A stretch of DNA of 63,844 bases, the filler included, from Octopus bimaculoides (taxonomy: Eukaryota): assembly GCF_001194135.2 (NCBI RefSeq). It is 8 parts of 7 records of this genome, joined end to end, with 100 filler letters (N's around TTAATTAATTAA, not from the genome) between each part and the next. Parts side by side here need not be neighbours in the genome. Positions count along the whole stretch, not along the records: positions 13,601 to 31,276 come from NC_068989.1; 7 more parts are not named here. One strand, 5' to 3'. Under the pieces are notes generated by a model, which did not search any database, was not told the DNA's origin, and was given only the letters and a program-made list of their open reading frames with translations. Shown in pieces: positions 21,036-28,882 of the stretch. The first letter of the stretch is position 1. Every line of letters starts with the position of its first letter. The translations under genes were made by a program, and so were the position numbers.

Positions 21036-21325
21036 TTAATAATCCTTGATAAGGGCCTGAGACAACACAGAAATGGTAAAACCGAAAAGTAGGAGACTAC
21101 TTGAAGCATACATACTTCTGGCAAAAGACTTCTCGTTGCAAATATGTTCATCACAGATACACCTGCGTACTGAAAATGACCGAATTGTGTACGTCCTAAT
21201 GCTAGAAAATATAATAGCCAGGTTTGATCTCCTGTCTATTTCTTTATTGATCCTTTCAGCACATATTTTTGGGCTATCTTTCTCAACTTTCAAACATCCA
21301 CGGTGAAATATAGTCACTCTCGATT
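21036..21325 (-). CDS. Last coding exon of a GPI-anchored Ly6/uPAR (quiver/sleepless-like) protein
   Basis: Strong acceptor TATTTTTATTTTGCAG|AA. Encodes (E)SRVTIFHRGC...KIC...RRCICDEHICN, then a small-residue spacer and hydrophobic tail SSSLLLFGFTISVLSQALI, ending in TAA. Confidence 0.85.
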
Positions 21326-21604
21326 CTGCAAAATAAAAATAGTTTGCATTAGTTTTTTTTAGTAGAATATTGTATCAACATCACATACTTAATGGATGTG
21401 TGTGGTTGAAAACTACAAAGCTACAGTATTTTGTCTAAGGGAAGTCCCTTTAAAGATATATATACTGTTAAAAAAAAACAAAGCATAACTTCAAAGCTGT
21501 AAGCTGTGTTTTTCAACACTATACATCGAGAAGGCGACTTCTCTGAGATGAAATACTGCAGCTTTGTAGTATTTAACAAGAGACATACATTAAATATGTG
21601 AAAT

Positions 21605-21815
21605 TGGTTTCAAATTTTGACACAAGGCCAGCAACTTTGGAGAAGGGATAAGTTGATTGCATCGATCCCAGTACTCAAAGGGTACTTATTTCATTGACCC
21701 TGAAAGGATGAAAAGTAAAGTCGACCTTGGCAGAATTTGAACTCAGAATGTAAAGATGGATGGAATGCCACCAAGCATTTTGTCTGGTGTGCTTATGATT
21801 CTGCCAGCTCACCAT
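21605..21815 (-). mobile_element. SINE family C, strongly CpG-decayed
   Basis: GATGGATGGAATGCCACCAAGCATTTTGTCTGGTGTG versus ...GACGAAATAC...AAGCATTTCGCCCGGCGTG in the copy near 48050. Confidence 0.8.
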
Positions 21816-22989
21816 CTTACATTGAATATGTGATATTGATAACATTTACATTATTGAGTTGCTTCTAAAATAAAAATCACATTTAAATTTAAGAATGTTC
21901 TCAAAATGGTTTTATACTAAGACATGCAAAGTACAAGCAGAAATACATGGTGACCTCTTGACTGAAGAAATATAAGTTCCCATATGTGTATTACGGTAGT
22001 GAAAATTTGTCATGCTCACTTTATAGCAAATTTTATTTATTTATTTATTTTACATAATATTTTGTTAAAAAATAGAATTATTGATCACAGATTTTACAAT
22101 GGGACAGTGATGGGTTCATTGATTTTACAATAGATTGTTTGTATAATACAGGTAGAACAAATACCATAATGTACTTCATTTAAAAGCACCTGTTTATCAG
22201 TTTCCTCATCTATGTTTACATCTTTTACCAATATACATTACCAGAAGGTGTACATAAACACATATCCTCCTATACACAAACAGATATTACACAACTTGAA
22301 TTGTGGTATTTTTCACTTGGTCAGGTGACTGTACAAATCAGTAGGTTTCAAAATAATATGACGGCAGTGAAACCTGTATAGGTCAGTGGTTGTTGTCTGT
22401 CATGCAACAGAATGGCTGTGTCTTCTTTGAAATTGTCAAGGAAAAATTTAGGCATGTGTAAGTGAACTGAAACTATTTCTTTATTACCAATTATGATGTA
22501 AGATAGGATTGTAGCTGAGGTGAAGCTTCTGTATAAGGCAAAGACTGCAGAACTTTGATCAATTCATAGATACCTTAGTCTTATCTAATTCTGTTTGTGA
22601 GATACTAGTGGTCTTTTCTTTGTTTTTTGATTTTCAAACACATGGACGCACGTGTGTGCATGCATGCATGCACACACACACACAAACACACAGTGGAGCT
22701 AATCTTTTAGTTGAGACACTTAGAACCAGATTTTTGTTTTGGATTTCAGAATGACTGTATGTTTGTATTTCTAAATTGGAAAAAAAACCCAAGTTTACAC
22801 ACATTTTCTTGTCTAGATTCACATATGTAACAGTTTCACTTTGGAAATGTTTTGCTTTCCATCAAAACAAATTTAATTATTACACTTTTTACTTCGGATT
22901 TTTAACCACATAAAACAGCTTCAAATTTCACATTGGTTTGCCATGTAGAAAAAGGCTGCTTGTCATCATTGTTTTAAGAGCCACATTGT

Positions 22990-23375
22990 GTGCATTGGAT
23001 GGAAATTGTTGAGGTTGAGTTTCTAAATCTGGATGCCCTTCATATCACCAACCCTTACCTGTTTTCAAGTAAGGTAATATTTCTCTATGATCAGATTTGT
23101 CTCAGAAGATTGGAAATGAAGACTACTTTAGTGACGGTAACATTTGTTTTGAACTATTATGTAATGTCATAGGCAAAGTGACACACACACACACATGTAT
23201 GTAAAAGCACCCAGTACACTTTGTAAAGTAGTTGGTGTTAGGAGGAGCATAGAGCCATAGAAACTATGTTAGAACAGACATGGACCTCGGGCAGCTCTTC
23301 AGCAGGCCAACTCCTGCCAAAATATTCAATCCATGCCAGCATGGAAAACAGATGTTAAATGATGATGATGATATA
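22990..23375. mobile_element. Two RTE 3'-tail fragments (22990-23100 minus, 23200-23375 plus)
   Basis: CTGGATGCCCTT and CCATGCCAGCATGGAAAAC..GTTAAATGATGATGAT match the RTE tail at 25900. Confidence 0.6.
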
Positions 23376-23405
23376 TGTGTATATATATATATATATGTAT
23401 GTATA

Positions 23406-27950: not shown

Positions 27951-28195
27951 GTATGCATGTATGTATGCTTGTGAGAGTGTGTGTATGTTTGTGTCTTTTT
28001 GTTTTAAAATTATGTGATTATTATAAATGAATGTTGTTCATTTTGAATATTTTGCAAAAATGTTTGGCCACTGGAGAAATATTACCTTGCTTGGAAAAAA
28101 TTCAGTGTCAATGATTGGAAAGACATCTGGTCATAGAAAGATCTGGCTCAAATAAACTTCCATGCAAGTAGGGACATTAAAACAATCTTTGATCT

Positions 28196-28400
28196 TTCTT
28201 TTACTTGTTTCAGTCATTAGTCTGTGGCCATGTTGGGGAACTACCTTGAAGAATTTTAGTTGAACAAATTTATCCCAAAACTTATTTTTTTTTAAGCCTG
28301 GTACTTAGTTTATCATTCTCTTTTGCTGAACCACTAAGTTATGGAGCGTAAACACACCAACACTGGTTGTCAAGCAGTGGTGGGTGACAAACACAGGTAG

Positions 28401-28440
<40 letters not shown>

Positions 28441-28498
28441 GTGCGCATGTGACAGACATCTTTCATTTTCTGTCTACCAAATCCACTAAGCCTTTTGC
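28196..28498 (-). mobile_element. SINE family B lacking its head
   Basis: Tail, internal (CA)n and core match the other copies. Confidence 0.75.
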
Positions 28499-28630
28499 CT
28501 AGTGTGATAACGATTCTTATTTCTTTATTGCCCACAAGGGGCTAAAGTGTGATAATGATTCTGTTAGTGTGATAACAATTCTGCTAGCTCACCACCTTAG
28601 TTCTCAATTAATATTAAGAAGATAACTTAC

Positions 28631-28882
28631 CATTTCCAAGAAGGGTAACATTAACTGAACCACTTAGAGTGCCACAAGATACATCAATGTACTGGTTACT
28701 ATGTACTGGACAATTTTCTAATTTGGATGACTCTTGAGCAGTGGGGTTTTCAAGATTGATGTCTTCAGGAGTTAAATCTTTGCATTTGTCATTGTTTCTG
28801 TTCATGAGGACTTGCTTTGCAATGTCAGTTATTTTGTTAAATTCTATATATGAACAGACAACACAAGTTTTACCTGCAACAC
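28631..28882 (-). CDS. Internal coding exon of the Ly6/uPAR (quiver-like) gene
   Basis: Acceptor TTTCTATTATTGTAG|GT, donor AATG|GTAAGT, 252 nt, phase 1-1. Encodes (G)VAGKTCVVCSY...DKC...ENCP...VSCGTLSGSVNVTLLGN and splices in frame to 21325. Confidence 0.85.

Follow-up and report, generated by a model that had tools for sequence, protein, structure and literature searches.

A spliced gene of Octopus bimaculoides, LOC106873119, for a probable LU (Ly6/uPAR) superfamily protein with enlarged loops

The window analysed here is a stretch of 63,844 nucleotides (nt) of Octopus bimaculoides DNA, and one piece of it, ending at position 31276, carries two coding exons of the gene LOC106873119. This piece is the reverse complement of chromosome CM046609.1 (GCA_001194135.2) at about 56.63-56.65 Mb, where two large assembly gaps flank it. 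When exons 2 and 3 were joined and translated, a protein database search returned XP_014775833.1 and UniProt A0A0L8H2U2 with 100% identity over 100% of the length. The former, a protein of 202 amino acids (aa), is named "uncharacterized protein LOC106873119 [Octopus bimaculoides]" in RefSeq, and the latter received the name "Protein quiver" through the automatic naming of UniProt. Because of this complete identity to a database protein, chance could be ruled out for the two-exon join. The stretches 28882-28631 and 21325-21036 are very probably coding exons 2 and 3 of the annotated LOC106873119, the product of which would belong, with a single domain, to the LU (Ly6/uPAR, three-finger) superfamily and within it to a small mollusc group with enlarged loops.

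The first-pass annotation of this DNA had described the gene as hidden. This does not hold, since RefSeq and UniProt already carry exactly the same model, and for the same reason no new gene is added here. The origin that it gave, a spliced cephalopod gene of Octopus bimaculoides, was borne out, as was its remark that the list of open reading frames (ORFs) contained just two separate fragments, 28614..28910 and 21036..21317. The reading of the raw sequence had recovered the correct two-exon join across 7.3 kb plus a gap.

All features of LOC106873119 are on the minus strand of the window (Table 1), and cysteine (Cys) and residue numbers refer to the full 202-aa protein. The gene has exons of 67, 252 and 290 nt, with both introns in phase 1. 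Exon 2 is bordered by the acceptor ttattgtag/GT and the donor AATG/gtaagt (a slash marks the splice boundary). It codes for the last part of the signal peptide and for Cys1-Cys5, and takes in loop 1, the long insert between C3 and C4, and strand one of loop 2. Exon 3 follows the acceptor ttttattttgcag/AATCG and codes for the second strand of loop 2, the RGC motif, Cys6-Cys10, N170 and the C-terminal signal. The in-frame junction 28631/21325 read in the first pass was confirmed, with canonical splice sites, a split codon G/AA that gives E107, and an open frame of 179 aa which reads VAGKTCVVCSY...CICDEHICNEKSFARSMYASSSLLLFGFTISVLSQALIKDY up to the stop. The 23 extra N-terminal residues of the database protein (MMGKPIYFALFEFCVTLLVIANG) are encoded by exon 1. 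This signal-peptide exon lies beyond the end of the window piece at 31276, but it does exist in the genomic locus, 8676 nt upstream of exon 2 as assembled. The candidate polyadenylation signal downstream of exon 3 is weak evidence, since the region is AT-rich.

The gene models take the upstream acceptor of exon 2, at 28882. An alternative acceptor 9 nt downstream (gttgcag/GT, exon start 28873), which is also in frame, was rejected as unused by the database models in either Octopus species. The tandem in-frame acceptors (28873-28891, minus strand) read ttattgtag/GTGTTGCAG/GT, and O. sinensis has the second AG as well; its use would remove the residues VAG, which lie around the predicted cleavage site of the signal peptide.

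Table 1. Positions of LOC106873119 features along the window
Feature	Position	Strand	Remarks
Exon 1 (signal peptide)	L001:10001-10067, beyond piece edge 31276	-	67 nt; MMGKPIYFALFEFCVTLLVIAN + G; GT donor
Intron 1, 3' part	28883..31276	-	continues past the piece edge
Coding exon 2	28631..28882	-	252 nt; last two bases of the G23 codon to N106, plus first base of E107; splice sites read directly
N100-V-T102 sequon	28644..28652	-	first strand of loop 2; read from sequence
Intron 2	21326..28630	-	7305 nt as assembled; phase 1; GT-AG; full of transposon remnants
Assembly gap (N run)	24907-25714	.	inside intron 2, non-coding
Coding exon 3	21036..21325	-	290 nt with the TAA stop (21038-21036); second and third base of the E107 codon to Y202
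Tail like a glycosylphosphatidylinositol (GPI) attachment signal, residues 171-202 (EKSFARSMYASSSLLLFGFTISVLSQALIKDY)	21039..21134	-	small residues S173 and A175, short spacer, hydrophobic end
Candidate polyadenylation signal AATAAA	20931..20936	-	100 nt past the stop codon; equal offset in O. sinensis

Relatives were collected with an exhaustive HMMER scan, in which a profile of the two Octopus proteins was run against 1.84 billion representative proteins at E <=0.001. Four clusters were returned, namely the Octopus pair (with one representative), Argonauta, a Logan transcript and Potamilus, and a word-indexed profile search supplied two more proteins from Sinanodonta. Besides O. bimaculoides, the family comprised O. 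sinensis XP_029641865.1 (75% identity), Argonauta hians GAB1603546.1 (43%), and, with 20-31% identity, Potamilus streckersoni KAK3603517.1, two Sinanodonta woodiana proteins and the SRR6517992 Logan transcript. The members of this small family have in common ten Cys, the long spacings between them, G93, G97, V99, R115 and F157, as well as targeting signals and intron positions, while the terminal CN was not retained outside Octopus. When the protein was compared by tblastn with the window and both Octopus loci, no paralogous exons were detected, so no local Ly6 cluster was seen.

The structure of the gene was found again in these relatives. The O. sinensis locus is free of N, with exons of 67, 252 and 293 nt, and its two introns have GT-AG sites and are in phase 1. 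In Argonauta hians the exons measure 64, 228 and 278 nt and the introns are short and gap-free (intron 2, 1441 nt), and the unionid bivalve Potamilus streckersoni has exons of 55, 258 and 287 nt; in both of them the homologue of the E107 codon is interrupted by intron 2, in phase 1. The SRR6517992 Logan contig (L003, 1049 nt) contains a whole ORF of 187 aa at 336-899, which is intronless and reads straight across the junction position, and its product is about 30% identical to the octopus protein. This contig looks like an mRNA because it has an adapter remnant, flanks like untranslated regions and an uninterrupted ORF, and the relative it represents may be a decapodiform or other molluscan counterpart. 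Two further members of the SRR6517992 cluster (P0006 and P0007) came from other Logan contigs.

The N run within intron 2 of O. bimaculoides is separated from the donor by 2.9 kb and from the acceptor by 3.6 kb. Both of its flanks aligned collinearly with the single gap-free intron 2 of O. sinensis (5738 nt), and since the run is intronic and its flanks are collinear in this way, the reading frame across the junction is independent of the gap. The left flank (24560-24906, plus strand) is a fragment of a PHD-finger ORF of a long interspersed nuclear element (LINE). Its protein sequence shares 68% identity with that of another copy at 17400-17657 (minus strand), which adjoins a reverse-transcriptase ORF. 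Because this fragment runs directly into the N run, the gap interrupts a LINE copy, and this intronic copy probably explains the gap. A hidden exon within the gap was considered and rejected. The spacing of Cys5 and Cys6 is 24 residues in three octopods and in the transcript-derived relative (26 in bivalves), the introns of O. sinensis and Argonauta are gap-free, the proteins are collinear and the flank is a LINE fragment; therefore no exon is missing in the gap.

The cysteines of the domain are C29, C32, C56, C80, C92, C117, C128, C162, C164 and C169, all ten placed as in the pattern CxxC...C...C...C...RGC...C...CxCxxxxCN that had been read from the raw sequence. The unusually long loops were also recovered, with 23, 23 and 33 residues between the Cys pairs named for them. 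The ten Cys are invariant in all seven family members, and C169-N170 is present in both O. bimaculoides and O. sinensis. LU domains are defined by ten plesiotypic Cys, an Asn after Cys10 and a length of 60-90 residues, and their genes follow a rule of three exons with phase-1 introns, in which the internal intron falls at the loop 2 tip and exon 3 encodes the GPI signal (PMC6600238). With the exception of length, these features were present in the Octopus protein and gene, the loop tip as modelled and the GPI signal as a candidate one, in agreement with the LU layout of the first-pass annotation.

For targeting of the protein, a hydrophobic, signal-peptide-like N-terminus was seen in all seven family members. 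The N-V-T sequon noted earlier is present as N100-V-T102, and N-x-T is kept in five of the seven. The C-terminal hydrophobic tail is also real: 33 residues follow C10, with a hydrophobic stretch near the end, the best 12-residue Kyte-Doolittle window reaches 2.2, and the protein stops 3 residues past the stretch. All seven members have a like tail of 22-34 aa, in which small residues and a spacer precede a hydrophobic end, and S173, invariant in the 5-sequence alignment, is plausible as the region of the omega site. Judged from these sequence features, the LOC106873119 product is probably lipid (GPI)-anchored. A secreted or single-pass transmembrane LU protein would be quite an unlikely alternative: the Octopus tail continues past its hydrophobic stretch with three polar residues (KDY), the bivalve tails end in RFG after K/R residues and secreted LU forms also occur (PMC6600238), whereas a tail of this length and composition without a cytoplasmic domain is the classical GPI signal, and exon 3 encodes it, the arrangement known from LU genes for GPI-anchored proteins (PMC6600238).

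A full-length AlphaFold model of the protein was mediocre, with a mean predicted local distance difference test (pLDDT) of 69, and its Foldseek list was similar but noisier. For this reason the mature domain was remodelled with AlphaFold2 from the 7-sequence alignment, which gave a pLDDT of 81 and a predicted template modelling score (pTM) of 0.76. This model has a long beta-hairpin, formed by residues 88-103 and 106-121, and the modelled turn, L104-G105, would stand directly beside the split codon E107. The inserted stretches carry predicted helical segments in the model.

Several results weigh against reading LOC106873119 as a functional gene for an LU protein, and they concern both the constraint on the gene and the family of its product. 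Between O. bimaculoides and O. sinensis the coding sequence is 87% identical and the introns 84-92%, and the ratio of nonsynonymous to synonymous substitution rates (dN/dS) is 0.62 at dS 0.20, with a binomial p = 0.07 for the synonymous excess. Short-term constraint is weak on these figures, since the coding sequence is no better kept than the introns. Weak short-term constraint is common for Ly6-type genes. In the protein collection searched there was no transcript-derived copy of the octopus protein, its cluster having a single member (n=1), and the literature search found no mention of the locus, the protein accessions or SRR6517992. Such results speak for a gene model that is a prediction artefact or a decaying gene, with ORFs that had been joined by software and were not expressed as a functional protein in O. 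bimaculoides. This explanation is nevertheless highly improbable, because three octopod genomes retain an intact ORF with the ten domain Cys and all four splice sites, the sole indel between the Octopus species is in frame where 3.9 gap openings were expected (p = 0.10), the bivalve homologues have matching intron positions and phases, and a spliced mRNA-like contig came from a relative. LOC106873119 is considered a functional gene on the basis of the intact ORFs and splice sites, the Cys invariant as far as bivalves and that spliced transcript.

On the side of the family, the domain from Cys1 to Asn170 spans 142 residues, compared with 60-90 in the LU consensus; the extra length sits in the loops, and the Cys framework is unaffected. 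The Asn after Cys10 is lost in the other members, being Q in Argonauta, E in the Logan relative and D or C in the bivalves. The only recurring Pfam family was QVR (PF17064), which matched five of the seven members with a best E of 0.0016, all five matches being above the default E of 0.001 and none being reported at the gathering score. The octopus protein reached 15.3-16.1 bits (E = 0.024-0.041) against a gathering cut-off of 27.3, and the product could be called 'QVR-like' only in a loose sense. Sequence searches of PDB with the protein and two family profiles gave chance matches only. As to the three-finger fold claimed at first, in Foldseek against PDB LU-domain proteins (C4.4A, GPIHBP1, ActRIIB, CD177 and TEX101) led the list with 11 of the 14 top matches, and uPAR came lower, but none of the matches was significant (best E = 0.17, probability 0.75, TM-score <=0.40). 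The assignment to the LU (Ly6/uPAR) superfamily is held with high but not formal confidence.

The conservation between the two Octopus species was not even along the protein. Residues 26-55, from the Cys1-Cys2 turn through loop 1, were the most variable (17 of 30 identical), and the Cys3-Cys4 insert was the best conserved (21 of 24). Residues 50-82 (about 28802-28704, minus strand), an inserted stretch that surrounds Cys3 and Cys4 and spans the interval between them, read NRNNDKCKDLTPEDIN.ENPTAQES.KLE.CPV and were identical at 29 of 33 positions (~90%) between the Octopus species. These residues had the lowest model confidence (pLDDT 54-66), and their length varies in the other relatives.

Compared with GPI-anchored single-domain LU proteins such as CD59, Lynx1 and GPIHBP1, the octopus protein has the same plesiotypic order of ten Cys with the Asn after Cys10 in Octopus, a like combination of signal peptide and putative C-terminal GPI-type signal, and the same gene arrangement, in which the introns between the three exons are in phase 1 and the second falls at the modelled loop 2 tip. 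LU proteins also supply the best structural matches, none of them significant. The domain differs in size, about 142 aa instead of 60-90, and the extra length consists of 23 residues in each of the intervals Cys2-Cys3 and Cys3-Cys4 and of 33 in loop 3, stretches for which a partly helical form is predicted. A further difference is that no solved LU protein gave a significant match in sequence or structure.

Drosophila QUIVER/SLEEPLESS and Pfam QVR offer a second comparison. QVR is the sole Pfam model that matched the octopus protein, over profile positions 10-86 of 86, and the two share the RGC and CxCxxxxCN motifs, a GPI-type signal (putative in the octopus protein) and an N-glycosylation sequon, in addition to the automatic UniProt name. 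However, loop 2 carries the octopus sequon and loop 1 the predicted site of SSS, N57 (PMC4735452), the octopus loops are much longer, and the QVR score remained under the cut-off.

A course from synthesis to binding could be proposed from these features. The N-terminal signal peptide would take the protein into the endoplasmic reticulum, the ten Cys would form the five LU disulfides (LU pairing 1-5, 2-3, 4-6, 7-8 and 9-10), N100 on loop 2 would be glycosylated, and the C-terminal 30-odd residues would be exchanged for a GPI anchor near S173-A175. Through its enlarged loops the surface protein would then bind a second protein, either secreted or in the membrane, at its ectodomain. The analysis showed the gene with its splicing pattern and conservation and the LU-type layout of both sequence and gene, while the pairing of the disulfides, the glycosylation, the GPI anchor and most of all the partner are inferred. 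The most defensible statement is that the product would be a GPI-tethered LU-domain surface glycoprotein whose enlarged loops bind another extracellular or membrane protein.

By analogy with QVR and Lynx, the partner might be a neuronal channel or a nicotinic receptor, a doubtful reading which no data in this analysis prefer. Drosophila QVR/SSS acts on Shaker and nicotinic acetylcholine receptors via loop 2 (PMC4735452), and Bero modulates neuronal excitability (PMC10264074). The same gene and fold could instead serve a role other than neuronal channel or receptor modulation, such as that of an epithelial or glial junction-assembly factor like Boudin or Coiled, or of an immune, reproductive or other surface protein, and this has somewhat less than an even chance. 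The octopus protein did not reach the QVR threshold and it evolves rapidly (dN/dS 0.62), a pace that is seen more often in surface proteins of immunity or reproduction than in conserved subunits of channels. The roles of LU proteins are very diverse (PMC6600238), and the Drosophila Ly6 proteins Coiled and Boudin are known, from titles in reference lists including that of PMC10264074, for septate-junction organisation. Yet the weak Pfam matches go to the QVR model and not to the UPAR_LY6 or toxin models, and nothing favours the non-channel reading over that of a channel modulator. If the protein did modulate cephalopod ion channels or receptors, the Lynx/QVR principle would be extended to molluscs; nothing here points specifically there.

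It is also conceivable, but unlikely, that the family forms a mollusc-restricted 'long-loop' branch of LU proteins, in which insertions that are conserved and partly helical, such as residues 50-82, provide a new surface for binding; its partner or function would then be one that other Ly6 proteins lack, perhaps in the nervous system of cephalopods. The proteins of the relatives are uncharacterised and the octopus gene itself is already annotated. The remaining interest is modest: the LU protein is divergent and long-looped, it evolves fast, and its very few relatives come from octopods, unionid bivalves and a single transcriptome.

The introns of LOC106873119 and the sequence downstream of the gene contain several repeats. 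Copies of the same LINE family lie in opposite orientations at 24560-24906 (plus strand) and 17400-18412 (minus strand), and the downstream copy retains an RVT_1 domain (E = 6e-15). An ORF of 217 aa in intron 1 (29582-30232, minus strand), with an AP-endonuclease-type domain (Exo_endo_phos, E = 1e-7), borders an assembly gap at 30285-30448 and is probably the 5' part of another LINE copy. In intron 2, a frame-broken remnant of a mariner/Mos1-type transposase was found at 26184-27398 (minus strand; HTH_48, E = 2.6e-6; Transposase_1, E = 1.7e-15), and (CA)n/(GT)n microsatellites are dispersed at 28400-28440, 27700-27800 and 22650-22700.

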